Shown in pieces: positions 1 through 46,100 of a stretch of 64,000 bases of DNA (position 1 is its first letter; each line of letters opens with the position of its first letter). Position numbers and translations under genes: made by a program. The notes under the pieces were generated by a model. That model searched no databases and was not told the origin of the DNA. It saw nothing but the letters and a program-made list of their open reading frames with translations. This DNA is from Podarcis cretensis (lineage: Eukaryota). The DNA lies in contig OX638151.1 in assembly GCA_951804945.1 (NCBI GenBank), positions 40,982,001-41,046,000 on the forward strand, read 5' to 3'.

Positions 1-858
1 GTGAGGAGAAAACATGGCTCCGTACTTCACCCTTCCCTCCAGTGCACTTAGAAGGATTATAAGTTGTAACTTAAATGTAGGGTGGTATAGCCCCATAGAG
101 GATTCAGAGTACCAGCACTGCTTTGCTTTGCTCTGGCTTTGCTATAGCAGCAAATACTTTAAATAGAAAAAGCCCTCTGCTGTAAACCTTTATCCAATTA
201 TGTCCCCACCACTGAAAGAGCTCAGAAAGACTTGTCAACCCAGATGTAATTCTGTCACCTTCTTTCCCATTTCCTCTTTAACCTCTTCAGTGCTTAAGAC
301 TCATATTAATTCTACTAAATTGGACTTTTACTCAAATTAGCAATGTATATGTGTGCACACATTTTCTCTCTGTTTCTGTGTGCATGGGGGTGGGGCTGAT
401 CCAGGGGACGAGGAGAGAAGTGACCAGCAGGATTATGGGTAGGAGGGAAACTATCATAACAGTTTCAAGTACAATAGTTACTATAATATAAATGGTAATG
501 ATATAAAATTGTACATAGCAGTACTAGAACATTTAGACCATTCTCATATTTTAATAAAGAAGTTGGGAGGGGGATTCTTTAAAAGAAAAACATTGAAACT
601 ACATTGGTTTGTGTTTCAGTTGCCCTTTGGATATTCAAGAACTGACTAATAACAAACTGATCATTTAACATTAACAGAATGCAAAAGACAGATTAAGAGA
701 AGTCTTATTGCAAAGCCCAGTTTTACAAGTGTTATGAGAACCAAGTGACAGTGAGACATCATTCACATTGTTACGAGGAATTTGCATCATAGGAGACAAA
801 AGCAATAAAATGTGACTGTTGCAGCCATTCCAAGTATTCAAACAATTGTTAATTATGA

Positions 859-1228
859 GTGGCGCTGTGGTCTAAACCACTGATTCTTTTGGGCTTGCTG
901 ATCGGAAGGTCAGCGGTTTGAATCCGCCTGACAGCATGAGCTCCCATTGCTCTGTCCCAGCTTCTGCCAACATAGCAGTTTGAAAGCACACCAGTACTAG
1001 TAGATAAATAGGTACTGCTGCGACGGGAAGGTAAATAGTGGTTCCATGTGCTCTGACTTCCATCATGGTGTTCTGTTGCGCCAGAAGTAGTTTAATCATG
1101 CTGGCCACATGACCTGGAAAGCTGTCTGTGAACAAATGCCGACTCCCTCGGCTTGAAGTGAGATGAGCGCTGCAACCCCATAGTCACCTTTGACTGGACT
1201 TAACTATCCAGGGGTCCTTTACCTTACC
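859..1228 (+). mobile_element. Sauria SINE (older, diverged copy)
   Basis: tRNA-derived head GTGGCGCTGTGG...GGTTTGAATCC, body AGTAGATAAATAGGTAC, tail GGGGTCCTTTACCTTACC. Confidence 0.88.
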
Positions 1229-4200
1229 ATTCTCATTAAGGTGTTTGGGGCTGCAGTCCTATTGTGCTGTTAGTAAAAATAAACATCCTAGAAGCTTTTT
1301 ATGGCTGAATATCGGGGTAAAAATGCTTAAAATATAAACAAGCATCATAAATATACCAACAAAAAGGATTGGATTTTACAATCAGCAAATCTGTATTAAA
1401 TCAACATGTTTGGTACAGAAAGCCTTTTATAATCATTTCAGCTGTTAATGATTCTGCCATTGTGCATTCTAGGACTCTAAATGTATAATTAGAAGTACAC
1501 GTATAGATTACTCAGATTGCTACATTATATAATCAGAAAGATACAATTGTAAAATGATCTATTTTAACACTTGCTTAGCCAACAACTGAAATTTTCTAAA
1601 ACAGATTATTGTGCATAGTGATTTTTGCAATCCTAAAAATTATGTATAGATTTGTGTTTTTTAAAAGATTCATTTTATAGAGGATTTTGTGTACAATCTG
1701 GTTTTTCTGCTGATCTGTAACAACCTGGCCACAGAAAAATCCATATCTTGACAGTGAGTTACTCTTATAGGCATCTGTTTCCCACTTTATCTAGCATAAT
1801 TAAGACTTTAACACATGGTTTCCTGTGCATACAATGTGTAACTATTTGAAACGTGCCAATTGGATACTGTCAGTGTCCACCAAGGAAACTGGCTTCTTCT
1901 GGCAACAGGTGTACTGCTGCCAGGCTCAGCATGCCTAGAGGAGCAGCTCAGAAGACAAGAGAGCAGGCAGCTGAGGAACAAGCTTTTAAAAATCCATTTA
2001 GCTTCTGCTTCTACTTACCTGCCAGGCCAATGGAAGCAGTGGAGAGTAGACCTATAGTAAAAAACTGTTTGGAGATTAGCTATAGCTGAGAAAATAACCT
2101 ATACTGAAAGGAAAGTAAAAAACAGATGCCTTTTATGCCATCTGATGGCCATGCATTTCATATACACGCAGGTCCTGCTTTCCCAGTGCAATGCCTTCCT
2201 CTGAACAAGAAAATAATTTGTTAGGTCAGCATTCACATGACAAAGCTGGTGATTTCCATTACTTCCTATGGGAACATTTTTAATTTGTGATTTGTCCAAT
2301 CTCAATCCCTCCCTGGTTTATGCCTGAAACTGCCACAGCCAATCAGCAAAACCAAACAAAAGAAAAGCTGATTTGTTCAATCTCTCTTGCTCCCTGATTT
2401 GTCTGATCTCTCTCCGTCCCTCCATGGTTTCTGCTCAAAATGGCTGCTGGCAACAAGCAGAGCATGAACAAGTAAGGAAGTGGGCAAGCTCCAGCTGTTC
2501 AGATATCTTAATCAGCAGTTTGGGTATAACTGAAATTTTTGATAACAAGTGTTCCAATAGTGGGACCTGTGTGTACTAGTGAAAGGGGTCTACAAAATAT
2601 GTTATCTGCTTCATCATTACAAATCTAGATGTTGTGACCATGTATACTTCTTGATAGTTGGATACTTCAGTTGGAGAAGATGACCTCATTGCGGACAGAT
2701 GCTGCCCTGCAACCCTGGAAGAATAACATCAGAGCATCCTGCAGAAAAATGAAAAGAGGGACAAATAGTATAGGGACATGAATACTTACCAGATATCTGG
2801 AGAGACTTCGGGGAGGGGTGTTATGATTATGTTTATTTGTCTAGTTATATTTTGTTATATGTATATGAAAACCAATAAAAAGTACTTATAGAAAAAGCAG
2901 TGGAGAAAGAGGCATTTGATACAGTAGAATGGAGATTTTTCTTTTATTAACTGAAAGTATTTGGTTTTATACTCCAATTCTTAACTTGGATTTGCTGAAA
3001 GATGAGGAAGTGTGACCCTGTTGATTATATTGATGTGCTTCCAGAGGCAAGGCTTTTTGTGAACAAGGACATTGTTTTTCCTTTTGAGACTGTGGAACTA
3101 AAAGTTACCATCCATACCATGTCAAACTTTTGTGTTCATTTTATTTGATCACTCTATTTCCAGTCTATACCAGTGAGTGGATCATGCCAAGATGTGTTTG
3201 GAACAAAACAATTCACACTTTGCACCACATCCATCATATCTATCACTTCCCTTTTCCACTCATGTGTTTCCTGACCACGAATGCATGTATTTCATAGACC
3301 TGCATGTGCTTAAAAAAAGATTAAAAAATTGGAATGCTGGTATTTCAGAACTTTGACATTCTGATTGGCCACAGTCAGTTCTCCTTTTCCGACTGTACTT
3401 CATTTCTAATCACAATAATTTGTATTGTGTGATTGAAAAACAGCCTATGTCTTCTGTACAATGACACATGCACACAATGTAACTGGCAAATACCTCCTTT
3501 TACTAAAAGTTGGAACATTTATTATGGTCATTCATTATAAAGTGCTAACAGAATTGCTGGAAACCTTAAATTGCAATTTTTCAAAAAATAAATAATAGAG
3601 CTGCAGAAATTTGTGCATATACACTGTGCAAAAGTCTTTAGTAAAGAGATCTCTGCAATATTATAAAAGTAGTAACATGCCTGGCAGTAATGGAAAGAAA
3701 CAAAATTGCATGGATAGTGTGATCAGGTGAGAGCAGAAGAGAAGAGCTGTGATTAAAGGATAGCTTTCTGGAATTGTCATTTACCCAAATCAAAACCATA
3801 GCCAAATAATCGTAAAGGGTAAAAGAGCAAAGAGGCATCCATACATAAAGTTATGGATGAAAGGAAGAAACATTGTGGGATGTTTGCAAAAGGATGACAA
3901 GATGGTGTGGATGCCATGAAAAAACCACAGGAAACAGAGGAAAACATTGCACAATGTCTTGTCTCAAAACACCATTGATGTTTCAGGGGCTTTCAACCAT
4001 GGCAGCCTTCTGGTTAGGCCCTCTTGAGTTGGAACTGACTCCAGATGGTGGTGTTAGGCAATGATTGCTTGACCCCTTGCCAAATGTGCTTTGGGCTCCT
4101 GCAGCATTCTCTCATTTCTCCCATGCCATTATACGTTTAGATAAAAGTACTGGGAAAGGGTTTTGTAATTACAGAGTGAAACAGTTTAATAATTAGAGTG

Positions 4201-4596
4201 TGTAAATGGAAACTGCAGAGTTTAAAGTACCATAGTCATAAATGATTCTAGCAGGTATATGTAGAACAGAGAGAAGACCGAAACATATGGTGTGCCTGGT
4301 AATTGAGATGTAACCCATGGATGTGAAACTTGTAGCCTTCCAGATGACGTTAGCCTTGCCATCAGCCCCAGCCAGCATGGGCAATGATCAGAGATTATGA
4401 AAGTTGTAGTTCAACATCTGGAGGGCTAAATGTTCAGTTTGGGGGGTAGCAGTTGTGCATGGGTTCCTAGGTGTTTGAAGGTATAGGAGACAGAATGGAT
4501 TGGAGAAATGTGATTGAGAGAAGAGAGCTACTAGCAATTCAAAGAAGGAGTTCAGGTTCTAATGTTTTTTTTTTCTTGAGAGTCCATACTCAAGTT

Positions 4597-4975
4597 GGGA
4601 CGCAGGTGGCGCTGTGGGTTAAAGCCTCAGCGCCTAGGGCTTGCCGATCGAAAGGTTGGCGGTTCGAATCCCTGCGGCGGGGTGCGCTCCCGCTGCTCGG
4701 TCCCAGCGCCTGCCAACCTAGCAGTTCGAAAGCACCTCCGGGTGCAAGTAGATAAATAGGGACCGCTTACCAGCGGGAAGGTAAACGGCGTTTCCGTGTG
4801 CGGCTCTGGCTCTGGCTCTGGCTCTGGCCAGAGCAGCGATGTCATGCTGGCCACGTGACCCGGAAGTGTCTCCGGACAGCGCTGGCCCCTGGCCTCTTAA
4901 GTGAGATGGGCGCACAACCCCAGAGTCTGTCAAGACTGGCCCGTACGGGCAGGGGTACCTTTACCTTTACCTTTT
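4597..4975 (+). mobile_element. Sauria SINE (young subfamily with internal (CTCTGG)n)
   Basis: GGGACGCAGGTGGCGCTGTGG head, B-box GGTTCGAATCC, (ACCTTT)n tail, TSD-like TACTCAA. Confidence 0.92.
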
Positions 4976-5029
4976 TACTCAAATAAGTAAGAGAGGTCAG
5001 TGCCCATATTCTCAAACAACCAAAAGAAG

Positions 5030-5530
5030 GGCTTCTATTTTCTGGCGATCTAGGATGAAGGCACTTCTAGAGGTGATTATTTTGAACCCCAAGATTGCTC
5101 TTCTCTCCATTTTTGCTGCGGATGCCCAGGACCTTACTCAAATGGATCTTCTTACCTGCCTTATCGTGGCAGCACAGCTTACCATTGCTAGACACTGGAG
5201 AACCTCAAATGCTGACCTGTTTGAAGTGTGGTTTATGCAAGCTTGGGACTTAATTTTAATAGAAAAGGCAACAACAACTTCAAGACCTGAGGAACAATGC
5301 TAAATCAAATATACAACATGGTTTTGGTTTTTTTGTATGCTTTGACAACAGAACATGACTACAATCCACCTACAGCTCATGAAGATTTATGGAAGGACAC
5401 TTTTATTTGACGGGAAATATTTACATGATACTGAATTACTTTGAAATGTGACTGTGCTCTGGTGAGGGGGTGGGTCTTTATATCTTTTCTTACGTTGCTC
5501 AAACGGAAATGAAAAAAGTCATTTAAATAA
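5030..5530 (+). mobile_element. Decayed L1-clade LINE ORF2 C-terminal/3' fragment
   Basis: LIVAAQLTIARHWR...EVWFMQAWDLILIEK resembles non-mammalian L1 ORF2 C-termini; followed by an A-rich end. Confidence 0.5.
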
Positions 5531-5642
5531 ACCCAGAATTTCCTACGTCTTTACCCTGCCCCCAGCATCGACCATGATGATCAGTCTCACTGGAGTCGAT
5601 TTTCAGTCTCTAGCTCTACTGGCCAGTCAGCTGCAAGGTGTA

Positions 5643-5959
5643 CAGTGGTGCCTCGCAAGACGAAATTAATCCGTTCCGCGAGTCTCTTCGTCTAGCGGTT
5701 TTTTCGTCTTGCGAAGCAAGCCCATTGACAGCTTAGTGGATTAGCGCTATTAGCGGCTTAGCGGATCAGCTGATAAGCGGCTTAGCAGCTTAGAAAAGGG
5801 GGGGGGAGGGGAAAAAACCTGCAGGAACTCGCAAGACATTTTCGTCTTGCGAAGGAAGCCCATAGGGAAATTCGTTTTGCGAAGCGCCTCCAAACGGAAA
5901 ACCCTTTCATCTAGCGGGTTTTCCGTCTTGCGAGGCGTTCGTCTTGCGGGGCACCACTG
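5643..5959. mobile_element. Tc1/mariner(pogo/Tigger)-type MITE, family A
   Basis: TA|CAGTGGTGCCTCGCAAGACG ... CGTCTTGCGGGGCACCACTG|TA. Confidence 0.85.
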
Positions 5960-8223
5960 TATATGCATGCATCCAGTCAGCAATCACTGTGCTGCTAGGT
6001 CCCACCTTGATCTGCAGCTCACAGTTTTTTCAAGCAATTCCTTCTCTTGGAGAATGAGCTTTTAGCAATTTCCATTGAAAATAGCCTGAGAGGACGTTCA
6101 TCCCTCACCCAGAGTTTCCTTGTGATTGGCAACATTAGCCAATCAGAAGTCATCAGGACACAGCCATTTGCATGGCAGAGAGGTGCTTCTAACTGATGCC
6201 CCCAACCAACTCTGTACTTGCTGTGAAACCTCAGCTTTCTCCAGTTCTTGTGTGCTGCCCCCTAATTGGGTCCTGACTCAGTCACACCTCCTTGGGCTGT
6301 GGTGGAGCAAGAGCAAAGCTGGATTCCTCAGCTACCTCCAGAGAAGCAGGCAGCCGGAGGTATCACAGCAAGGGGGAAATCCCTCTTGCTTTTACAGTCC
6401 TCTTTGTAGCAAACCTTTTGAGTTCTCGATCAGGCTGGATGTTACACAAAAAGCGAGGAGACGCCGATGAAAAAACAACAATAGCATGTTGCCACTTTCT
6501 GATGTGTCAATGGATATTTAAAGTGTTAACATGCATTTAAGAGGTCTCAAAGGAGGGGACATTGGTTTGTTGATCCTCTCCTTGATAATGAATATGTTGG
6601 CAGGCACATAATTTGCTGAGCTATTCCTCATTTCTGTAATGGATGTATATATTTTGTTTTGGTGTGCTCAATAAACATCATTTCTGTCTTGGAAAAGACC
6701 TGTGTGAGTCATTGAGTAAATCTGCCAACATGCATTGATAACATAATTTAATCCTAATACATGAGACTCTTGGAATATGTGTTTAGTAAAAGCATGGTTT
6801 TACTCAGGAGGTGCATCAAGTATGGTAGGAGATTTCACATTAACATGCTGCTGAATCCAATTCTTGCTAGATGAGTGCGCTTTGGAAGGAGATATGCCCA
6901 GAGGTGTTTGACTTTTAGTTAATCAATAGAGGCAGAGGCAAGATGCAAAAGATAATGGAAGGATGTTGCAAAATTACTGTAGACTTTGAGTCTGATACAC
7001 ACTTTCTGAATCTTTATGAGGCTGGAATGGAGTACCAATCTAGTAGCAATTCAGCTTGGGTAGGTTTCTGCACTTGGCCAGTGGTTGTTTGTCCACCCAT
7101 GGTGTTAACTTGTTTTGGAAGGTGCTGAGTTGTTCAGTTCACATTTGGGGGGAATAATTTTTGCTGTGAACATAGGGTCTACAGGAGAGCCATGGAACAG
7201 AATGGAAGCAAACTGGTCAAGCCAAGTCTGGCTCAGTTCTGAAGCAGGCTGAACTGTCTTTCTGGAGGGCAGCGATCCGTGCAAGAACTGTGAGATCCAG
7301 GAAGACTGACAAAGCAAAGTCCTACGGCAGAAGAATGGACCCCTTTGAGGAGGACATTCAACCATGTAGTTCTAATTCAACTATGTAGCTAGCAGGAGAC
7401 AGTGCAAGGTTCCTGCTGGTGCAATAAGTTCCCCTGCCTTCCCTTTGCCCCCCCCCCCCCAAATTGACTTGGAGGTGGGGAGAGTTAGGGAAACTCCCAG
7501 AACAGCACACAGGAAGGGAGGGGCAGCTCTTTCTGTCAGGCAAACAGAAATGCTTGTGGTGTGTTCTGCCAAAGATGGACAATGATGACCACTAAAGTCG
7601 CTCTTTAACAGGCTTTATTTACAGGCTGAGTTAAATAAGGAACAAAGCAAGAGGAAACGGACATCTTGCAGCTCCACCTATGGTTGGAGAATCACTTTCC
7701 CTTTTTGGGCAAACAATGGGTTGAATCCTTATAGGTCTGCACTGAGATTCCTACTGCCCATAACTGGGCTTGCACGTTGGAAAATATCTGGGAATGCCGG
7801 TGACGCTTGGTCACCTGTGCTTGATGTCATCTTCCCATGACCTTGTCTGCAAGGTCAGAACAGTCAGAACAAATGGTGGACTACAAAGGGATGTGATGGT
7901 GAAGATCTTCACCTGCTACTCTATTCAGCACTGAGTTAATGTGTGGGGATCCAGCTTGCCAGGCCTCCAAAGGACACATGGTCCCATATCTCCCACGCTG
8001 TTGGTCAGATAGGCTTTCTAGAATAAGTGCTGATTCTAGCAAGCAGTGATTAACTCTTACGGATCTCTACAAAGCTGTGCTAGTGTAACTTCTTGCAAGT
8101 GCTAGGTCCAGGCCTGTGCACCTCTGAGGACATTCAAAGGGAAAATTTGCAGTGCATCACATGTAACTCTTTGTAATACAATGGTCTTCGGCATATGTCC
8201 AAATACAAGCTGATGGAATGTTT

Positions 8224-8497
8224 GTGGGGTTGGCAACCTAAGGCCCATGGGCAACAAGTGGCCCACAGGGGTTGTTTAACTGGTCCATGAGCCGCCCCTG
8301 AACTGAGCCACCCACTTGGCGAGTCCCTACGCGCTGCACTAAAGCAGTGTGGCGCGGGGACACGTTTCCATGGCGCCGGAAATCGCGTCTGCACCGACGC
8401 TGGAAATTGCACCTGTGCAGACACTGGAAATCATGGGCGCGGAGGGATCTCCGCTGGAGTGAACCGGCCCAGGCGCGGTAAACCTTGCCAACCCCTG
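8224..8497. mobile_element. hAT-like non-autonomous element
   Basis: Terminal inverted repeats GGGGTTGGCAA ... TTGCCAACCCCTG around a GC-rich interior. Confidence 0.6.
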
Positions 8498-10631
8498 CCC
8501 TAAAGCAGTGGAAAGCTTTCTGCAGGTTTCTACCCCCAATCTGTCATTCATCAATACAAAACTGTATTTTATTTTGACAATTTATATACCACTTAATCTG
8601 CTGTCACCTCTAAGTGGTGTACAGAAGACATAGTACAAAGGGTTGGACCCCAGCCACATGCAGCACAATTTTAGTTGGGAAATAGGATGGAAAGAAATGA
8701 AGAGAGAGAAATAGGCAGTCATAAAGCAAAGGGTATCATGGAGTGAAGGAATCGGAGAGAGACCACACCTCTGTGCTAAAGCTCATTTCCCATTTTTGCT
8801 TCTTGTGCTTGGCTCTTAAACTTTGTAGCAGGGTTTCTGCTTGGTCTGGGGGCCTTTTGGATCTCAGCTTCCTGTCCTTTTATTTGTAGTCATATAAATA
8901 TTATATTTTTAAGGGAAACGGGGAATGCAATCAGACAAGATGTAATAAACCATAATAAAACAAAACCCTACTTTCTGTGTGTAGTTTTTTGATGGAGGGG
9001 GCACACCTGGTCATCCAGATCAATCCCAGGTTCATTCATTCAAGCAAATAGATCCTCATATGGAGTCCGTATATCTGAAAACTTTGCATATTTATTGCGC
9101 TTACAGAAGGTCACCACCTCAAGTTGCTAGCCAAGTCATGTATTTTGTCCTTTGTATGATGGTGGGTCAGGTGGACCTTTTTAAGTCATTAGTTAATTTT
9201 CCATGAGTTGGTAGAAAAGGATCCCCTGCCCCCCAGATTACTCGTAATTGTCTGATCTCTGTCGCTGTGCATACTGGCATGCAGTTCTGGTCTATATCAG
9301 AAGTTGTCATTACAGAATTTCGTGGTGGCGGAGAATGGTGAAGGATTGTTGGGGAGAGTTGTAAAGACTTGCAAAGAAGAAACAGAAGACTGAAGTTGCA
9401 GGATTTTGGCAACTTTGGACTTTCGACCTGCTGAGAACTTGAAGCAAAGACTGAAAACCCTCTCAAGGCTCGGAGAGAGAACCCTTCTTGAAGCAACTGT
9501 ATCGAGTGTGTGCATTTGTGCTTACTAATTAAAACAACCTCCGATAGAGTTTGTCTGCTGCAGGAATTTTAATCGTTTTGCTGAACTTCTGACTGGGCAG
9601 TAAGCCAACTGATTATTGGGCACAAACTTCCAAAAGCCCTTTCCTTCCATTATTGTGTTAGATAGTGCCCTTAGCCAGTTATACTATCCCTCTGACAAGT
9701 TCCAAAGGACAGGGATACAGTTTGATAAGACACTGACATATTTCGATTTCAAATGAGTTACCAAGATCATGTTTGCATGGCTGATTACGTGTCAAAAATC
9801 AGCCAAATAATATGGCATAATATTGCATGTACAGCACTCCAACACCACCACATGCCAGAGCTGGTTGCTGTGTTTGGGGTTTGACATATGCCTACTATTG
9901 CCTTAGGATATTGTTCAGAACCCATCAGTTTACTCAAAGGGCAGGGGTTTCTGTGGTGTGTGTCAGGGTCAAACAAAGCAGTTAGCAGGTGTTTTAGTGG
10001 TATATACAGCCATTCTGCAGCTGGTGGAAGAGAGCATGCCTCTTTTCATCTGGGAAAGTGGAGAAAGACATCATTTGCATCAATCACAGTTTAATTTCAA
10101 TTCTTAATGGGAAATAGGAACCCCATAAAAAGGAGGGGAGAGAGTACCCAGCCTCTTTTGATTGTTTTCCTCTTTGTGGCTTCTATGCTGATCTAACTTT
10201 TTTTATATAAAAAACCCCCCAGAAAACCTTGTTATCATGTCATTCACTTGTTGGAACAAGGAGTTTCTGTCAAATGACATCATTGCTTCCATACTGAAAA
10301 AAGTACCAGAGCTCTGAAATGCTTATGTACCAAGTTTAGGTTGGCTAAGAATAAAACACAAGAAGACACCTTCCTAGGGAAATGGTCTCCCTTTGTTTCA
10401 TACATGAACACTAACAGAGATTGCAGAGATTTGGAGGATAAGGGCTGTTTTTTCCTTCTCTTTAGAGATTTCCACACCTGATGACAACAGGAACAGACTG
10501 CAGTAGAATTTGGTATGGTTGACTTTATGTACTGCTGCATGAAGGAGAGACGTGGAAATTGTAACCTAAGTTTTGAATATTGTTTATTGAGTTTGTACTT
10601 CCTTTGAAGAGGTTCATTCAAAATTATTATT

Positions 10632-10637
10632 TTTATT
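10632..10637 (-). terminator. Candidate ABCC10 polyadenylation signal (AATAAA)
   Basis: First canonical AATAAA on the minus strand downstream of the ABCC10 stop; a second lies at 10583-10588. Confidence 0.4.
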
Positions 10638-11080
10638 TAAAAACAACAGGGCTGTGCTTCCCTGTACCCCCCCCAAACCCTGCTGTGCTTCTATCCACAT
10701 ATCTATTCAATGGAGATGCCTTTCTCACTGTCCCCAGGCAAGAATTAGACAGGCATTCCTGGTTGATTGATGCGCAAAAGCCCCACCCCAAATTCTCCCT
10801 CTTCCCCACAGCTCCCTTTTGCCCCATGCTTGGCTCCACCCACTTAAACGCTTCTCACCTGCCTGCTGTTGCTTTCTGCAAGAACTCTAGCATTCTTATG
10901 AGAGGCGCTTGTCTACATTATGCAAGAGAAACTCCCTTCGCTCCCAGCATCGTCAAGAATTGAGACTGTGACTGTTAGTGCAAAGCTAATGCCCTATGGC
11001 ACTGCCCACCCCTTTTCCTATTTTTGCTACTTGTGATATTGTTGTTTTCTTCTTCTGACCCTCCTGTATTCTTTTTGTAG

Positions 11081-11211
11081 GTGTGACACAGGCTGGGAAG
11101 AGGAATACTGCAAACAATGTGTGAGGATGCCAGACTGTAGCCATGGGACTTGCTGCTAACCCTGGCAATTCAGTTGCCGAAGTGGCTGGCCAAGCAGGTT
11201 CTATGACCAAG
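11081..11211 (+). pseudogene. DLK2: DLK2 (delta-like non-canonical Notch ligand 2 / EGFL9) relic exon, EGF-like repeats, in-frame stop
   Basis: 131-nt exon between TTTTTGTAG| and |GTAGGC. Translates CDTGWEEEYCKQCVRMPDCSHGTCC*PWQFSCRSGWPSRFYDQ versus recalled human DLK2 CDPGWEGLHCERCVRMPGCQHGTCHQPWQCICHSGWAGKFCDK. TAA at 11157-11159. Syntenic position, convergent with ABCC10. Confidence 0.88.
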
Positions 11212-11576
11212 GTAGGCCACGCCACTTGGGACAGGGTGGGGACGTCTTGAATAAAGTCAGGACAGGGGAAGGACACAGTGTTAAATGCTCAGCTGCCTTA
11301 CACTGCCCACATGGCCTTGTAGCAAGCTCTCCAGGGTCTCACACAGGGTTTTTTCTTGATGCCGAGATGTGTTGGAGCGATTAACTGCAGCCCTTGGCAG
11401 TCCTGGACAGAGAATGTTCTGTCACCTGTTCTCAGTTCGTAAGCTGGACTCTCAGCCGTGTGTGGAGTGCATCTTTCGTTAAGCTGCAGATACCAGGAAA
11501 GGGTCCCACATTGCAGAGGGGAACATTCCCAGTCGTGAGGTACCAATTGTCCAGTGTTTGTGTCTCTGCAGGGAGG

Positions 11577-32349
<20,773 letters not shown>

Positions 32350-33830: not shown

Positions 33831-36299
33831 ATAAATAAATAAATACAACGCTGAGCTTCCTGGTTATTTTTGCCACTGTGTTTTGCTTTGCCTTTTCATA
33901 CCTCGGAAACGTGAAAGTGAGAGTTGCTAAATAGGAAACAATAGGGGAATCCGGGATTGTATCACAGCTGTGCTTTCCCGTCTCTCCCCTCGCCAACTGA
34001 GCAAACTAAAGTAGAAGCGAAAGCAAGGAATAACCCAAGTGGGATCTGCAACGACACCAACACGTGTGCGTATTGTGTTAGGCTGGTTTTAAAATTTAAG
34101 CAGGAGCGGGGAGGCTGGGATTTATTGTGCTCGTACTGCGGGTTGCCTGCTGTTAAATCCTCCTAGTGCAAGGTCGAGTGGCCGAGAGTGATCTATAGCA
34201 GTTTTGCAATACAGTACCTTATTGTCTCATTGTTGCAAGTGAGGAAACGGGCAGAGTGTGGCTTACAGCAACCATGTTATGTAGACCAAGGCTGTATCCA
34301 ACTTTATACGTTTTGCTCAGAGGAAACCCACTGAAATTAATGTGCCTGCTCATTTCAACGGGTCTAGTTTGAGTGTAACTAACGTTGGATGCAACGTTTG
34401 TTATCCTCGGACTCGGGAGGTATTTCATAGACAGCTTTGAGAACTTATCACCTGTTGGCAAAATGCAACGTCAGGGATGCAATCGTCCGCCGAGCAGAGA
34501 GATAGGAGAGCAACGACATCACAATAAACGTTACAGGTATTTCATGTGAACTCGCCCGCGCCGGTGTTCTATATCAGCTGCAATGCTCCACACAATTGTA
34601 TGGAAAACAGAATGCAGAACAGAAAAAGACAACCCATTCAAAACATACCTCGCGTTAAAGCAAATGTCAGTTGAGTGGTCACTTACATCGCCCCCATCAA
34701 ACCCCAGCCCAGTTTGACCTGCGCTTCCCTGAATGAGGAGGCTGTTTTCATTGTAAAATGAAAGCCCCGCCCCCTCCAAAAACAGGAAGCCACAGGTATG
34801 TTGCTCTATACCTTTTTTCGTCTATGGGCATTTCGTTCCCCTGCTGCAACCAACTTACTTTCCCTCTAGCGTCCTCTAGAGGGTGGGAGGGTGTCTCGGC
34901 ATGTTGGCAGGGCGAGCAGAAGCTGGCAGCGGGTGAACTAATCGCGTTGCTGGTTATGTAATGTTGAGATCCTTTCCCATAGTTTGACTTTACAACCTTC
35001 TGGGCTGGGCAGAGGGAGTCCACCAACCATCCCACCCACCCCTCCAGGGCAGTGGATCATGAGAGTTAGAGTGTACACAAAATTATTGAAATAGAGCAGA
35101 ACATAAATCACAGCTCTAGTGTTCGGCAGCACCACAAAAAAATATATATATTGATCCAAGGCAAGAATCCTCATGATTTTTACATCTATTGACAACAAAG
35201 CCACCAAATCACAGAACATATGTGTGAGGTAGTCTATGATTTGATGGTGGTTTTGAGGGGGTCCTTTGTAAGTACTATGATGATCCATACGGATCTCTTT
35301 TATAACTTGGCTTCTGTTTCAAAAATCCCCAAAGGCAAAATGTCAAGTAGGGTTCAGAGACAGGGACAAAGGAAGCTGCCTGATACCTATTCAGACCATT
35401 GGTCAGTTAACTTAGTATGTACTATCAACACTGACAGGCAATGACTTTCCAGAATTTCAGACAGAACACCTTCCCAGCTCTACCTCAAGATTCCCAGGAT
35501 TGCATGCAAAATGCTACAGCTCTGGCAGCCCATGGGCCAAATTTGCTTAGTTGGTGGGTATTATCTGCCTGCCATCCCAGAGGCTAAAGGTGATGCAGCA
35601 AAGTAGACAACAAATCAGTTGGCTGGTAAAACTTGCCTGTCATTCCTCACTGCCTTCTAATTCCTGATAAAAAGACCAGAAGACCTCTCAACTGAAAATT
35701 CAACACAAAAAGTAATTGACACTTACCTAAAATCTTCACTGCATTTTAATGATATATAGTAACCTCCAAACAGGTGGTTAAACACTACTAGAGATTCGCC
35801 ATTTACCAATGACTTCCTATGTAAGTGTCCTTAGCCTTTGAATTATGGTAACTCCCTTCACATTCGACTTTGTTCTGCCTTATCTTGTTTTCGCGATATT
35901 ACTGAAGATAAGGATAAATTTTATGATCAAACTTTCTCTGTGACCAATGGTATTCTTAAGAATGTTTATTCAGAAGTATTTTGTTTATTTACTCAAAAAC
36001 ATCTATGCCCTTAACTGCCCATGAATGGTCCCCAAAGCAGCTTGCATACGATATTAAAACAATTCAAGAAAACACAAAACTAAAACCAGCAACGAGAACA
36101 GCATCACCATGAACAACAGTTAAAAACTGATCAGAAATCATTCACTAGAATTGAATCCATGCATCTAAATTCATATCCTGAATGAAGCGCGTCACAGGCA
36201 TGCATTCAACAGGTGACGCTTCCCCTCCGCACGTTGCTAACAGGTAAACCTCCTTAGTTTACTAAACTTTTTCCAGCAGACATATTAAGCTCAGAGGAC

Positions 36300-37150
36300 G
36301 TTGACGGGGGAGATTTAGCGCACACATGGGAGGCGGAGATTGGACCTAATAAGGCGGGCAGCCTAATAACACTGCAGTTTACACTGGGGACCGCCTCCCG
36401 TTGCGCTTACCTTCCTCCCTATCACGTGACTCAGGGCCCGGGCCCGCCCCCCGCCATTTCGTCCGTCCGTGAGCCGTTCGCAGGGCTCGCTGATGGTCTC
36501 GCGACGCATCTCCCCCCCCAACCCCGCCTCTTCCCTCGGCCTCGCACGCGGCACGTGACCGCTATTTCCCTATCCGCCATTTTGTCGGGGCAGCCCGAGG
36601 AAGCTTTTTGTAACCTCAGGCTCTTGCGTTTGCGTCCGGTGCGCGCGCGCATGCACGAATGGAGCGTGCTGAGGGAGGATGGTCAGCAGGAGGAGCAAGG
36701 AGGAGCGGCCTCGGCGAGGAGTGAGGGCGGGCGGCCTCCGGGGCTCCTTGAGCCGCCGCCGCCGCCGCCACTACTACCACCGCCGGCAGCGCCATGTACC
36801 GTACCAGTAGCGTGTCTTCCTCCAGCCGGTCCAAAGAGAGCAGTAGCTCGGGCTCGCGCAGTTCCCGCTCCGGTGCCTCCGGTTCGACGCGGGGCCGGAG
36901 CCCGCGCCGCTCACGCTCGCCTTCCCCGCGAGGCCGCCGGTACCGTTCGCCGTCCAGCAGCCGCTCTTCTCGCCGCTCGCCGTCCCCGCGCCGCAGTAGT
37001 CGGGTACGGTCTCCGTCCGTGGGGAGCCGGAGCCGAGCCGGCTCAGAGCAGGCTTGCCCGGCATAGCGACCTAAGGACCGGGCCTTGGGAATATTAGTCC
37101 GCCCTCCCCTTTATCCCCCCTCCTCACGGCCATGGTAACGGCTCCCTGCC
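36300..37150. promoter_or_regulatory. CpG island / likely bidirectional ZNF318-ABCC10 promoter
   Basis: Very high GC and CpG density. E-boxes CACGTGAC at about 36423 and 36552, GC box GGCCCGCCCC at 36441, YY1-like CCGCCATTT at about 36451 and 36574, NRF1-like GCGCATGC at about 36647, minus-strand donor AG|GTAAGC at 36411/36410. Confidence 0.8.
36794..37003 (+). CDS. ZNF318: ZNF318 exon 1 coding part (Ser/Arg-rich)
   Basis: GCCATGT start, MYRTSSVSSS...RRSSR, donor CGG|GTACGG in phase 0 matching exon 2. Confidence 0.85.
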
Positions 37151-40100
37151 TGGCTGCTCGCTTGCTCGCCTGAGCCATACACCGAAGTGGTGACAAACGG
37201 AGGATATATCCCCTTTGGTCTCTTCCTGTCGTCACCTTTCCTGCAGGTTTCAGGAAAGGCGACCCTTCCCTTCGCGCTCCCGAAGTGCACAAAGACCTCT
37301 CACATCGCTGGGCCAGGGCCTTAGCAACCTCTTGCATCCCCCCAACAGTTGTACCTGCAAGCACAGTTTTGGTTAGGGGAGGACTAACACAAAGGCATAG
37401 TTGTTCAGCCAAAGTTGGCGGGCTCCCCCCCCCCCCAAAAAAAAGTCACGGAGGACGCAAGCCTATACACACTTACTTGGGAGTAATTTAATTTAGTAAG
37501 ACGTCTCAGTAAGTTTAGAGCTGGCCTAAGAGGTTGCCTAAGGTGGAGGAGCAAGTGGTACACCTGCCCTCCGTTTATGGTTCATAAGGCTGGTTCAGTG
37601 ATTTTGGTATCCAAGGCTGGTTCAGTGATTTTGGAACATGAGACAGAAAATCCAGAAAAACCTCTTCCACCCCCCTTGCTGGCAGTAGGAAGATAATAAC
37701 AATAACAGACTACTACAAATTCACTGCCCTTCCATTACCCTTTAAAGCAGTTGCCTACGGTGCACTCTTCATTTCCTAATGGTAGGGTTGCCCAACATGT
37801 TTTGGGGAATTTATTTTCAGGTTCTTTGGTCATTATTCTTTCTTAGAAAAGCAGAGAATGCTTGTGGGTTGTGGGAGCTTAGTTCTTTGTGGATTGAATA
37901 GGAAGGTAGGACCATGCTAAGTTTGAAACTAAACATAGTATAAGTACTTGAAATATATTTCGGGAGAAATCAGTAGGGTTAATAAACAGGCTAGGTCATA
38001 CAGCAAATGGCTAAAGTAACCTGTCCTTTGGAAAATAATAATTGTGTCCATTTTCACAGGTGTATATGGGAATAGGTAAGATAAACAAAAATAAAATAAA
38101 TGGAGCAATATTTATACAGGAATGAAAAGTAGTTAAGCAGTTGTCCATATACGAGGCTGCAACATAAATTACCTAACTAGGAAATAAGTCCCACTACACA
38201 TAGTGGAGTCATTCTGAGTAAATACGCACATAATGACACTGGTTGCAATTGTAATTGTTTTGGTTCCCAAAGTACTTCACTTCTCTTTTGGCCTTTGATT
38301 TTCAGAAATTCTGCTAGTTTGAAAATCATTTCAGCTAAGCATCTGAGGAACAGTTTCTTAGATGGGGATATTGAAATTAAATAGATTATTTAGGAAGTAT
38401 AAATATTTCATAATTGATTTTTAATGTTCTGATTGTTTATAGGTATGAAACCCAAATAAATTTTAAATACATATGTCTATTAGCCTTTGGCTTACCTCAC
38501 AATTCATCATCTTTTAATTTCTGCTCTACTGCTTTGCAGTTGTAACCTTAGAAGAGTTTTAGTATATTTGTTTTGATTTATAATTTTCCTATGCTTGTTG
38601 GGGATAGCGGAATATAACACAATCTTAAGCATATTGACTCAAAAATAAGTCTCTTTATATTCAATTGGATTTGATTTCTGATAACTGTGTTTAGGATTGC
38701 TGTTAGACAAATTAAGTTTATATAATAAAAACTTTTAATACGCCATCTCTTAAAGCAGTACTAGAAAATACTTATGCCCTTACTGAGGGAAATAAATCAG
38801 TTATGTGGGCAGACATCAAGAGTGATTTTTTTTTTTAGCCTAGCACACAATTTCTTGGAAATTAGAGGTGGCAGTCTCCAGTGTTTTTCAAACTTGGATC
38901 CCCAGCTGTTGTTGAACTACGACTCCCATCATTCCTGACCACTGGTCCTGCTAACTTAAGGTGATGGGAGTTGTAGTCCAACAACAGCTGGGGACTCAGG
39001 TTTGAGGAAAAACTGCTGTAAACAGTGTGGGGCCAAATCCTTTCCCATCATTATAGATAAAAAGCATTTAATGGTAGGGTAGCACTTTTTTTTTTTTAAA
39101 ACCCATGGGCCACATACACATTTAACCAGAACTCCAGGGACCTCATGCCAGTGGTGGATGTGGCCCCCCCATGCTTCCATGCCCACACTCACATGTGCAC
39201 ACAGGGCACAGGCCCTTGGCCCTTAGCTGTTCCCCAAGTTGGCCCTCACATTCCCCAGCCCAGCAGGGACCTCCCTGTTCATCAAGTTATCAGACTGATG
39301 GCTGGGCAGGGACTGATTGGATTGCCATCAGGGCACTAGACTGTGTGTGGTTTTTTTGTTTACTTCACCCACCCCAATGTTATGTCTCTCTTATTTGCTC
39401 ACAAAATTGGTAGGTTCTTTAGAGGGCCAGGGAAATGGTTTGGGAGGCTTCAGGCCAGGGGTTAGCTACCTGTGCTCTAAGGAAAATAGTGCTGGGGGCA
39501 CAGCACTGATGTAATATGTAGATCAAGAAAACTGAACAGAATTGTGAGGACCTTTCATTAAAGCTCCTAGAGTATGAGTAATAACCTGCTACTGGTCCTT
39601 TTTGATCTTCTGGCTTAGAATGAGCAGAGCTGCTTGTGATCAGCCCAACCAACTGAACAGGAGCTTTCCCCAAATATTCAGTGGCATTAAAAAATAGTGA
39701 AATTGACTCAGGCCATGTATAAAGTACAATACTCAGGCAAGAGTCCTGGAAATTAATAGTACTTTTTAAAAGATTTTCCTGAAAATCCAGACTGCTGACT
39801 TGCTGCCCAGTGTTCTGAAAAGGAAAGGTTGAAAACTTGTGATAGCTGGGGAGTTGAAACCCAACTTAAAAGTGAACAGTAGCCTACTTGAGAGGGGCAT
39901 AAGTCACTTCCAGGTTAGATAAAGGAGCCCCAAACTGCAATTATGGTTTTATTTCTGCTCATGGCATAAGTGATACATGGGTGGAGTTTATAAAACTACC
40001 AATATAAAATTGTATATTTATAAACATGAATTCACCGGTAGTCATGTACTGTGGCAAAGCAGTTACATGAGTTTTCTGGATAATTTTGAATCAGACTTTT

Positions 40101-43100
40101 TCAGTGCCTTAAATTGATTGGGATTGGATTTAGTTTATTTGAATTACAGTGGTACCTCCGGTTGTGCATGGGATCCGTTCCGGAGTTCTGGTCAGATCCT
40201 GAGAAATTTGCAGCTGGAGGTGCCTGTTCTGCACACGGTGCGGTAGAGCGCTTCTGCGCATGCACGTGACAAAACCTGGAAAAATACTTCCGGGTTTGCC
40301 GCGTGCGTAACCCGAAGGATACACAACCAGAGGTGTATGCAGCCAGAGGTACCACTGTATTTGGTTTTTGGATTTTAATTAAGCCTTGTTTATACATGCA
40401 TGCTTGAGCACACAAATCTGCAAATCAGTAGTTCTCATGTGAGAGAGAAGATGCTTTCCAGAGACAGTCATCTAACTCAAAAAATGTTGAAACTTTGAAA
40501 TGCTCCAAATTTAACTCTATTCTTTCCATCCATTTTATTACTAATTAATTTTATGAAACAATATATTCCAATAAAGTGAGAATATTCTGTGGAAACAAAC
40601 ATCACTGGGGATATTTTCTGCCCTACATCACTGGCTGCAATTTTTCTTAATGGTAAAGTTGTCAATCTAGTTTCATTGCCTACACATGTGTTCACAGATG
40701 CCTTCAGTGCAGATGAGTGCAAGTTTGACATGCATTGTCTGATTTAAGTTGGCGTTGACACTTTAAATTGCTTGATTTCACAGTGGTTTTGGCTTATTCC
40801 TTTAATTTGATTAGTTTTCATTTCAAAGCAACAAAGGTGATGTCAAAGCAGCTTACAACAATAACATAATCTATCCTAATAATTAGCATGATGGAACTGT
40901 ATTTTTCTCCAATTGCAGAGACGTTCCACAGGCCGGCGCTCACGTTCCCCGGGCCGGCACTCACGTTCCCCAGGCCGGCATTCTCCAAGTCGACATTCTG
41001 AGTCTTCAGTGGAACAGAATTTACGGATCACAGTTGGCAATGACCGTTACGGCATTGACACACCTGAGAGAAAGAGAATATCTGATAGACTAGGCTCACC
41101 AGTTGATAGTCTGAGTGATTTGGACAGGTATGCCTCTGAAGAATAGCCTTTCAGAATTACACCTTTTAGTTCTCGTGTCATAGGTGATGTAAATGATCAC
41201 CAACTTGCTGTGAGATGGTATGGAAATTGTATGGAAATTGTGAGATGGTATGGAAATTGTATTGGATGGAATATATCAAGAATCTCACAGAGATGTTTTG
41301 CTTTCTTCACTTTTATGTCGTATTGGTACTCCCAAGTAGTTGCCAAAACCCGGTGGTAGCTCTTAAACTAAAATTGTGCAGTAAGATATATAAAAGGATG
41401 TCACATAGAGGATGTCAAATATATAAAAGGATGTCACATAGAGGAGGGAGAAAGGTTGTTTTCTGCTGCTCCAGAGAAGCGGACACGGAGCAATGGCTCC
41501 AAACTACAAGAAAGAAGATTCCACCTAAACATTAGGAAGAACTTCCTGACAGTAAGAGCTTGTTTGACAGTGGAATTTGCTGCCAAGGAGTGTGGTGGAG
41601 TCTCCTTCTTTGGAGGTCTTTAAGCAGAGGCTTGACAACCATATGTCAGGAGTGCTGTGATGGTGTTTCCTGCTTGGCAGGGGGTTGGACTCGATGGCCC
41701 TTGTGGTCTCTTCCAACTCTATGATTCTATGATTCTATGATTCTATGATTCTAAGATTAGATTCTGAAGAACTAAATGCATACAAGTACAGGAATAATAT
41801 GAATGTATGCTTGTTGTAATTTTAACCATGTTGTTGATGGTGATGGAATATATTATAAATGCCCATAAATTAGAAAGGGAGAAAGTTGAAGATAAAAAAA
41901 TAAATAAATTAGGAAGTTAAACAGCTAGTTGGCTGAAGGCAACATAAGATTCTCACTAGATCAACACTCTTGAGTTTTTATGAGAATTTATTTCAGTGGT
42001 GAACTACTGTGGATAAAGTTTTTATGTGTCTCAGTTGCTGGTAACAGCGGACTGTCCTTTATAGCTGAATTGCTAACAATCTCAAAAAACATTTTGATAG
42101 ACTATTTAACCATTGCTTAAATTGGTGAAATTCTGAAATTAACACATTTGTCCTATGTACCATTGCTGCTGATCTTACTTCAGTTAGCGTGCCATATCTA
42201 TATCAGTTCTGTGATACTATGATTGCAGTGATCCATTTTGTACAGGCTTGTATTTTGTAGTCAAGTTTGGTAAACTTATACTGCAAGCCTATTAGAAGTA
42301 AATCCCATTGAGTTCACTGGGCTTACTTCTAGGTAACTGTCTCAGGTTCCAGCTACTGTTTAACCTATATCATCTTAAAAGCAAATTATGAAGTATAAAC
42401 TAGGCTTAAAATTAAGTGAATAGGTGTCAATTTACAGCTTGCATTTGGTCCCAAACAATCCTTTTTGCAGTTTGTGTTCTCTTGTTAGAATCTTGTGAAG
42501 CATAATTTATTTTTATTTTTTAATTAGCTCATTTGACTGGAGGGGTACATTTAAATTTTGTTCTTCCCTGCTGTATGGTAGTAGCAGTGCTGGTAAAGTT
42601 TTACTTTATTCCCAGTATATATAAATAAATAAGAGAGCATCTTTTATGAAATCTGATGAATACTCTTTAGCCTTCTTGTCATGCTGGCTTTTGTGAAGGC
42701 AGACCGAAGGCATGCTGGCTTTTGTGAAGGCAGTGGAAAATGACTAATTATTTTACTTGGATATAAGGGAGGAATCATTTAGAGACAGTTAACGTATAAT
42801 GTCATCCTTCAGAGAAGTTCACAACAACGTTGACTGCAGTGACAGGAAATAAAGTTGCTTTGATCCAGGAATTGTAAATAAGCTTTGGAGAAGGAGTGGA
42901 CCATTTATAGTTTAGTGAGATTGTAATCATAAGAAATTGCTGGGTGCTTGTTCACATGTAGTGCTATATAGGATGGGTGGGTCATTTATTTATGCGCTTC
43001 TTCTATATGTAGGACACGTAGTGTGAATTGTGGCCTGTTGGTGTATGTTTGTAACAAGTGTGTTTCATTCAGTCTGCACTCTTCACACCAAAACATCACT

Positions 43101-46100
43101 TTAGCAGGGCCTAGTTGGTATGAATATTTAGTAAACACCCAGGACAAGCTTCCAGAATACCACTCTTGCAGAATGTAAACAATATTGCCCACAGTGGATA
43201 ACAATAGATTTAAAACTGTGTTCCTCTGCTAGCATCAATAGTAGTATTACAAGAGGTTTTGAAAATACCGTATTTTTTCACTCCATAAGACACACCTAGT
43301 TCTTAGAGGGGGAATGCAAGAAAAAAAATATTCTTTAAAGGGAGTGCTGAGCAGAGCCTGTATGCATCCCAGGCTCTGCTCAGCGCTCCCTTTCATGAGC
43401 CGCATGGAGTGTGTGGAGGCTTTCCCCCGAAAACAGGCTGTCAGTGACAGGCTCCCCTTCTCCCTCCTAGGAGAAAAGCCCCCAAGAGCTGCAAACACGC
43501 TCCACACGGCTCTTTAAAGGTAGTGCTGAGCAGAGCCTGTATGCATCCCAGGCTCTGTTCAGCGCTCCGTTTCACGAGCTGCGTGGAGTGTGTGTGTGGC
43601 GCTTGCAGGCTGTCCTTCTCCCACCTCATAGAGCCGCACTCCCTTTAAAGAGCCGCGCCTAGCGTGTGTGCAGGTCTTGGGGGCTTTTCCCCCGAGGACG
43701 GGGAAGGGTAAGTGACAGGCTGCCCTTCTCCCTCCTTGGGAAAAAGCCCGCAAGAGCCGCACTCCCTTTAAAGAGCGCGCGGAGCGTGTGTGCAGCTCTT
43801 GGGGGCGTTTCCCGCCTGCATTCACTCCATAAGACACACACACATTTCCCATTACTTTTTAGGAGGGGAAAAGTGTGTCTTATGGAGCAAAAAATATGGT
43901 ATGTCTGCATCTGAGGAGTGTGGTGCATGCAGATAATTTCACACAACCTTTTCTGAAGAAGAATGGTGGGAGATGGGCAAAAAAGTACAAAGCTAGTTTT
44001 TAATCATTTTTCCTTAATTGAAATCATGAGTTTTTTAATTGTTCAATCGACAGTACTACTTATTTTTTTCTGCTCATTTTATCTTTAGTGGACTCTAATC
44101 TAAGAGGTTAGCAATAACAGCAAATACGGAACTGAAATATTTACTTTCTGAAAATGAATTGAAGTTTAAGAGAGAATTAAGCACCCATTTAGTAAACTTA
44201 CTAATTAGTGCTTCTTGTGGGAATTACTATTTCTAGGATGAAACTGCTTTCATTTTCTTTATTTTTCTGATATTTCTTGTGAAACAGAGGAGTTTTTGAG
44301 ACATAAAAAGCAACAGCAAAGTCATAAAACAAGGATGGCACAAGTTGGGCCTGTAGTTGAGTGCCCATGCTTCGGGTGCTAGTTGTCTGTACTTGTTTTC
44401 AGGATTTTCCTTCTGTCCATGCCCCTCAACAGTGAGTTGGTATTTGTTGTCTACAGCAGGGACAACCAACTCCCAAGAGACTGCGATCTACTCACAGAAA
44501 AAAAATATGGCAGTGATCTACCCCCTTTTTGGGGTGTTCAGGTGTCATTTTTTTAATGGAGGAAAGTCGAAGTTGTTAAACTTTTTTTAGAGGGGCAGGT
44601 CTGAAATGTTGAGCTTTCTTTTGGGGGAAAAGTCACTCACCAAAAGATTGATCAGGAAACAAAATGCCTCACGGGGAGGACAGGGCAAGGGGCCAGGGTC
44701 AGGTTCTATTTTTATAATGAATGATTTTAGAGTGTTATGTTGTGTTGTACTGTTTTATTGTTGTTAGCCGCCTTGACCTCGGCTTCGGCTGGGGAGGGCG
44801 GGATATAAATAAAATTTATTATTATTATTTTCCCCCCACAAAGGAAAAATTGACCATGATTGACTCAAGTCTCCCGGGGATCGACCAGTTGATCACGGTC
44901 GACCGGTTGGACATCCCTGATCTACTGGATATACTCAATTGTTATTTGGATTCTTTTGCCTTAAGTCTTTTGTGTATTTCTACAAATCTTGGGGTCTTCC
45001 TGAGCCTGCTGACAATTGTCTCGTGTGCATCAGTGCTGCTCTTTTGACTAAGTAAATTTCTATGCTGGAGAACTGAATTCACCATTTGTATATAGGATAC
45101 TTGCACTGTCCATTGTTTGTAGCTAGTTCAGAGTGACAACTTAATCTTGGTAACAAACATAATTTTGATTGAATCTCTCTTCCAATTGATATCCTGATCC
45201 TATGGACTTATTTTAGGTGTAATTGGGTCTTAAGTGGCTTAAGTGCTATAGCTAAACCAGAGCACTGTGTTTGATAACTGAGTTCATCAGTTGAGTCCCA
45301 TTTGCCATTATCTACCTTATTCTCCTGGGAACCAACTACCTTTTGGTTGCAGATATACACAATAGATTGTGAAAAACCTTAGAATGTAATTCTGTATTAT
45401 TTGCTCCTGTCAAAGTGGCATTGCTGTCCTGTATTGCAGTTCATATTTGAGGTTGGGACACTTTGGTCTGATTATTTGAGCAGTTTGTGTGATGAGCTGC
45501 TCATAATGTCAGACCACAAGAAATCAGCAAAACCACATTTCACTGTTCATTCACAAATTACATTACATGCATATATTATATAAACTTCACTGTTTTTCTT
45601 GAAAAATCTTTGAGCTGTTAAGGCCAGTGATATTTTGTCTTCTAAATGCTGGGTGCATTGGGGGGGGGCATCTCAGAAAGCAGGTTTTGAAAATACTAGC
45701 AGGGGAAATGCTTATGTTTTCTTCTATAATATTGTTGCTGATGATGGAGGAATCATAATAGCCATGGTGTAAAAATACTTCTAAGTAATGTTAGGTTGCT
45801 CACTTCTCCTATTTTCATCCTGATGAAGTTATTGCTTCCCTGGATGGTCAGTCAGACATAAGAATGAATGAATTTTAATGTATGTAGTCCAAACTAAAAT
45901 AAAACAATTAAGGTGTATATGTATTTTGGAAATAATCTTACAAAAATTACTAGCCTGCAGGGCAAAGGAGGAACAGAACACTGTGTTTCTGTGCTGGGCC
46001 AAGAGGAGGAGGCTTTCCTCCTCTGGCAGCCTCTGGGTTTCTCTGTTGGGCTCAGAAGTAGCAGAACGCTCTGTCTCTCCTCTGCCAACCTACTCACTCA

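Follow-up and report, generated by a model that had tools for sequence, protein, structure and literature searches.

The DNA analysed here, a 64-kb window (64,000 nucleotides) of contig OX638151.1 from the wall lizard Podarcis cretensis, contains what we interpret as a pseudogene of DLK2 (protein delta homolog 2, EGFL9) at its orthologous locus, with the EGF1-2 exon as the last recognisable remnant of the gene. We give this reading a probability of about 0.72. A non-canonical Notch ligand restricted to vertebrates, DLK2 modulates Notch/Numb signalling, and its functional form combines six EGF-like repeats with a transmembrane segment and a short cytoplasmic tail. An initial annotation of this DNA had called DLK2 dead at its orthologous locus, and the lesions in the surviving exon, the missing 3' exons and the synteny agree with that call.

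The remnant and its splice sites are as follows:

11081-11211, plus strand: relic DLK2 exon (131 nt), covering the C-terminal part of EGF1 and the atypical EGF2 (the equivalent of JAG1 exon 6)
11055-11080, plus strand: polypyrimidine tract and AG acceptor, in sequence still near consensus
11212-11217, plus strand: GT donor (GTAGGC), still near consensus

The acceptor reads CTGACCCTCCTGTATTCTTTTTGTAG, with its AG at 11079-80 and a G as the first base of the exon, and the donor reads CAAG/GTAGGC, with its GT at 11212-13. Base 11081 is the last of a split codon and the relic peptide hence begins at 11082, in which frame it reads CDTGWEEEYCKQCVRMPDCSHGTCC, then a stop codon, then PWQFSCRSGWPSRFYDQ. 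The final base of the exon opens another split codon, so that the intron phases, read from the window sequence, are phase 2 in and phase 1 out. The 131-nt segment with an acceptor and a GT donor had been described in the initial annotation, exactly with this sequence and frame. According to PMC2725086, the equivalent exon of JAG1/2, DLL1/4, DLK1 and DLK2 usually lies between phase 2 and phase 1 introns. The size and intron phases of the relic are the same as those of the JAG1 exon 6 equivalent, which marks it as an exon of the DLK/DSL-ligand type; in length (131 nt), phases (2/1) and content (the end of EGF1 plus the atypical EGF2) it is built as the DLK2 exon is.

Identities to the individual ligands were counted by hand on the exon peptides shown in Additional file 7 of PMC2725086:

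Relic against chicken DLK2: 26 of 43 residues identical
Relic against human DLK2: 25 of 43
Relic against chicken DLK1: 19 of 43
Relic against chicken DLL4: 19 of 43
Relic against human JAG1: 17 of 43

At the 18 sites where the chicken DLK2 and DLK1 peptides shown there differ, the relic has the DLK2-type residue at 8, the DLK1-type residue at 1 and neither at 9. Its DLK2-type residues include the R-M in CVRMP, the T in HGTC, the S in SGW and the F before the last cysteine. The human DLK2 exon given in the initial annotation agrees with the alignment as shown, and the check proposed there, whether DLK1 or another EGF protein might be closer, comes out with DLK2 highest among the peptides compared.

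Statistically scored matches were obtained from structures and domain models. A PDB search with relic residues 1-25 matched the atypical EGF1/EGF2 of DLL1 (E 2.4e-4) and also JAG1, JAG2 and DLL4; no DLK chain was returned, and the scored matches are thus confined to DLL1, JAG and DLL4. The piece that follows the stop codon matches DLL4 residues 242-259, collinear with the match of the first piece to residues 216-239 of the same chain, and it matches the Pfam JAG1-like_EGF2 model with a score below threshold. When the window was translated in all six frames, a residue pattern of the DOS type turned up a single time; 200 shuffles gave no instance of it. The PDB and Pfam matches together with this shuffle control place the EGF reading of the relic beyond chance. 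An ESM Atlas search with the first relic piece returned generic EGF clusters only, below 0.9, and protein searches gave no candidates for either the 40-aa sense open stretch of the relic (full-length DLK2 lies outside the length range searched) or the 96-aa antisense ORF that crosses it.

The assignment of the segment to DLK2, as first proposed in the initial annotation, stands on the identity counts, the diagnostic residues, the exon size and phases and the tail-to-tail position next to ABCC10, and at the level of sequence comparison it is supported that the exon at 11081-11211 derives from DLK2 rather than from DLK1 or a DSL ligand. That the relic would be an exon of another DOS-domain ligand (DLK1, DLL1/4 or JAG1/2) would suit the restriction of the scored matches to DLL1, JAG and DLL4, but it is extremely improbable given the 26/43 against 17-19/43 identities in the peptides shown, the CVRMP block, the DLK2 type of 8 of the 9 informative diagnostic sites, a place adjoining ABCC10 that is the place of DLK2, and a scan of the 64-kb window that found neither a DSL-domain exon nor an additional EGF exon nearby; a chance EGF-like reading, which we hold to be just as improbable, is opposed by the lack of the pattern in the 200 shuffles.

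The exon is disabled by several substitutions, placed by comparison with the published alignment as shown in PMC2725086:

11157-11159, plus strand: in-frame TAA at the position of a DLK2 Gln, one step from CAA (published alignment)
11169-11171, plus strand: TTC (Phe) for the EGF2 cysteine of PWQC (published alignment)
11202-11204, plus strand: TAT (Tyr) for the last EGF2 cysteine, that of FCD (published alignment)
11100-11102, plus strand: GAG (Glu) for the Gly of the EGF1 GWxG (published alignment)
11133-11135, plus strand: GAC (Asp) for the small residue before the second EGF2 cysteine, which is Gly in all DLK2 sequences shown
11193-11195, plus strand: AGC (Ser) for the Gly of the EGF2 GWxG (published alignment)

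The change of Gln to TAA, of PWQC to PWQF and of FCD to FYD had been listed in the initial annotation and each is present in the window sequence. Beyond those two lost cysteines, three glycines that are near-invariant in the sequences shown have been replaced as well. The idea that several independent lesions disable the exon is thereby borne out by one stop, two cysteine and three glycine changes. Both GWxG glycines are invariant across the sequences shown in the published alignment (PMC2725086), and by comparison with these the relic has at least six independent substitutions at invariant or near-invariant residues, in addition to ~11 other replacements in its 43 codons. An open frame with all EGF cysteines, as a functional DLK2 would have, is not found here (TAA, Cys to Phe, Cys to Tyr). 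In the usual EGF disulfide pairing, the six cysteines of EGF2 form three disulfides; with two of the six gone, two of the three disulfides would be broken. On its predicted translation, the relic cannot encode a folded EGF pair of the DOS type.

An assembly or sequencing artefact, in which the gene would be intact in the animal and both the stop codon and the missing 3' exons would be errors, is very improbable. At least six hits on invariant or near-invariant residues plus ~11 replacements fit no base-calling error pattern, the window has neither an N nor a gap, and the adjoining ABCC10 terminal exon is clean.

The surroundings of the relic are as follows, with the exons of ABCC10 and ZNF318 each placed individually by comparison with database proteins:

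11577-11714, minus strand: ABCC10 terminal coding exon, with its TGA stop at 11577-11579
11580-32349, minus strand: ABCC10 coding exons, collinear with residues 1-1547 of full-length newt ABCC10
40919-59901, plus strand: ZNF318, head to head with ABCC10 (database protein mapping)
11212-11576, no strand assigned: spacer of 365 nt from the relic exon to the ABCC10 stop codon, without EGF-like coding potential in any frame
10583-10588 and 10632-10637, minus strand: two AATAAA signals, the first candidate poly(A) signals past the ABCC10 stop

The ABCC10 terminal exon ends in ...HLLHSGQQ followed by TGA, and from its sequence the gene looks complete and intact. ZNF318 is 95.8%, 96.6% and 97.0% identical over the whole protein to its counterparts in P. 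muralis, P. raffonei and P. lilfordi, respectively; its large exon is 95% identical to that of Podarcis muralis and 43-63% identical to those of other squamate families. These values identify the host as a Podarcis-like lacertid distinct from the three species compared. In cattle and human the gene order is ZNF318-ABCC10-DLK2-TJAP1 (PMC7655849, PMC8942952). TJAP1 falls outside the 64-kb window; within it, the tail-to-tail arrangement of DLK2 and ABCC10 that the initial annotation had stated is recovered, with the relic 365 nt from the stop of ABCC10 on the opposite strand and ZNF318 beyond. The strand and place of the relic fit the mammalian gene order, which makes this the orthologous position of DLK2. 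Since the first minus-strand AATAAA lies beyond the relic, the ABCC10 3'UTR would be ~1 kb long and probably includes the relic exon in antisense orientation.

Several other features of the two neighbouring genes were recorded. A G+C-rich stretch (0.55) at 36000-37400, with the first coding exon of ABCC10 (32349, minus strand) on one side and ZNF318 (40919, plus strand) on the other, is probably a CpG-island promoter common to both; a 223-aa ORF within it looks spurious. An ABCC10 intron contains a perfect tandem duplication at 15086-15285 (2 x 100 nt, 99%), and beside it are (ATA)n microsatellites with the inverted repeat pairs 15286-15650 and 23950-24299 on either side. The large ZNF318 exon carries in-frame tandem repeats at 56900-58020 (units of ~165-186 nt and 351 nt, 60-86% alike) that code for repeated '...KKPSELETAE..QLPES...' modules. 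An ABCC10 exon ORF at 18817-19158 (minus strand) matches an exon-level ORF cluster at 89% identity; the cluster was seen on >229 Logan, ENA and JGI contigs, so that public read sets and metagenomes commonly contain DNA of a related reptile.

With regard to the rest of the gene, a tolerant EGF signature scan of the whole 64 kb in six frames found the relic itself only. Together with the 365-nt spacer, this means that the EGF3-6, membrane-span and tail exons are absent from the place where they would be expected: the interval between the relic and ABCC10 has no room for the DLK2 3' exons and holds no trace of them. Six EGF repeats with a transmembrane segment and a tail were likewise not found anywhere in the 64-kb window. 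Upstream, crude cysteine-pattern and donor-anchored scans of positions 1-11080, run without a full-length sauropsid DLK2 reference, found no DLK2 exons, and no Pfam or Rfam families were found in the flanks of the relic. The 11 kb upstream of the relic contain copies of a tRNA-derived SINE and, judged by eye, a putative L1-type fragment (Pfam gave no match).

Copies of one tRNA-derived SINE family were seen at 891-989, 4596-4968, 27823-28183, 31736-32095 and 51959-52325. Over 227 nt, the copy at 4596-4822 is 99% complementary to the inverted one at 52099-52325, which points to insertions that are either very young or homogenised. A metagenome scan with the ABCC10 terminal-exon ORF returned five loci, none of them on a squamate contig or on one of human appearance. 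Two of these, MDSP01076133.1 (920-1057) and MDSQ01048998.1 (1583-1720), have a terminal ABCC10 exon that shares 62% identity with that of the lizard; by eye it is fish ABCC10, probably from host DNA in the metagenome, and on both contigs no DLK2-like ORF was found within 1.4 kb downstream of the exon. The remaining three loci are distant.

The simplest route to this state would be a deletion that removed the 3' two-thirds of DLK2 (EGF3-6, the transmembrane segment and the cytoplasmic tail). The surviving EGF1-2 exon would have decayed through point substitutions that produced one nonsense codon and replaced two cysteines and three glycines, and it would now be without coding function, probably as an antisense part of the ABCC10 3'UTR.

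As for the age of this decay, the DLK2 exon is almost frozen in birds and mammals, with 40 of 45 residues identical between chicken and human in the alignment shown in PMC2725086. At positions where the chicken and human DLK2 peptides shown agree, the lizard lineage has 15 changes. The changes need ~20 amino-acid-changing nucleotide substitutions in 129 nt, or ~0.2 per non-synonymous site. From this we infer, roughly and on an assumed neutral rate, that the exon has been free of constraint for a long time, at least tens of millions of years. The exon has no indel across its 131 nt and keeps both splice sites despite these ~20 substitutions. The unchanged length and splice sites are somewhat unexpected under long neutral decay and hint at recent or partial constraint, for example within a transcript or the ABCC10 3'UTR; they leave some room for a residual non-coding use.

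Such a use could take the form of a relic kept as non-coding RNA, either spliced into what remains of a plus-strand transcript or as a constrained part of the ABCC10 3'UTR. It would be compatible with, and not exclusive of, the main pseudogene reading, and we consider it improbable. The intact splice sites and lack of indels under heavy substitution speak for it, as do a plus-strand AATAAA at 11250-11255, 39 nt past the relic donor, and the minus-strand poly(A) signals beyond the relic. Against it, there is no Rfam match, and the four splice-site bases could have survived by chance along with the reading length, which is unlikely without being negligible (roughly a few per cent). The plus-strand AATAAA itself may be due to chance or may mark the end of a residual plus-strand transcript.

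To return to the DLK2 pseudogene, the loss is probably genome-wide in this lizard, with no working DLK2 presumed elsewhere in its genome. A functional DLK2 could instead survive upstream of the window or on another chromosome, the relic being a leftover or partial duplicate, and this would mean relocation or duplication rather than loss. The window spans only 11 kb upstream of the relic, which leaves space for such a copy. DLK2 is reported as annotated and expressed in the squamate Pogona vitticeps, with differential expression in the gonads and a place among the testis-upregulated genes (PMC9034607). Zebrafish dlk2 mutants have neural stem-cell and neurogenesis defects (bioRxiv 10.1101/2023.07.20.549453), and full loss might therefore be costly. 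Nonetheless, the relic sits exactly at the DLK2 site of a conserved gene order and no EGF signature was found in the 11 kb upstream or in the rest of the window, and we regard a surviving copy as unlikely.

A chicken DLK2 gene was used in PMC2725086. If the annotation of the agamid Pogona is right, squamates ancestrally had DLK2 and its loss is not squamate-wide; any loss would then be limited to the lacertid side. Among the papers searched, none reports DLK2 loss in any reptile, and Pogona is the only squamate in which they mention the gene. On balance, we lean slightly towards a complete and ancient loss of DLK2 in wall lizards, one that may extend to a wider lacertid or lacertoid clade; the relic may then have kept its intact splice sites through a present use in the ABCC10 3'UTR or a residual transcript.

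If true, a lizard clade without DLK2 would amount to a natural knockout, with DLK1 or other factors having to take over what DLK2 does. Such a clade would help to find out how far DLK2 can be dispensed with and whether DLK1 makes up for it. Comparative genomics has many such gene losses on record. The event is of a familiar type and the case is new; its interest is moderate, owing to the strong conservation of DLK2 and to the zebrafish neurogenesis phenotype.

Compared with known systems, the relic resembles DLK2/EGFL9 in its 131-nt phase 2/1 unit, in CVRMP, HGTC, SGW and the F before the last Cys, and in adjoining ABCC10 tail-to-tail with ZNF318 beyond. It differs from DLK2 in that a stop interrupts EGF2, other residues stand in for two cysteines and three conserved glycines, and no other exon (EGF3-6, membrane span) is detectable around it in the window scan. 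With DLK1 it shares the exon architecture and the DOS-type EGF pair without a DSL domain; unlike DLK1, which sits in another synteny block, it is identical at only 19 of 43 residues and has one DLK1 diagnostic residue against eight of DLK2 in the peptides shown. The JAG1 exon 6 unit (PDB 2KB9; PMC2725086) is a homologous exon-encoded fold unit, to which the first 24 residues of the relic align with E 1e-3 and the second piece aligns over EGF2. Canonical ligands have an upstream DSL domain exon and many more EGF exons, none of which were found beside the relic.

Unitary pseudogenes are lineage-specific losses of a conserved single-copy gene, such as GULO in primates. On the sequence of the 64-kb window, the relic is a candidate for this class: as in the established cases, lesions disable the copy at the orthologous locus, and the gene is presumably functional in related lineages.
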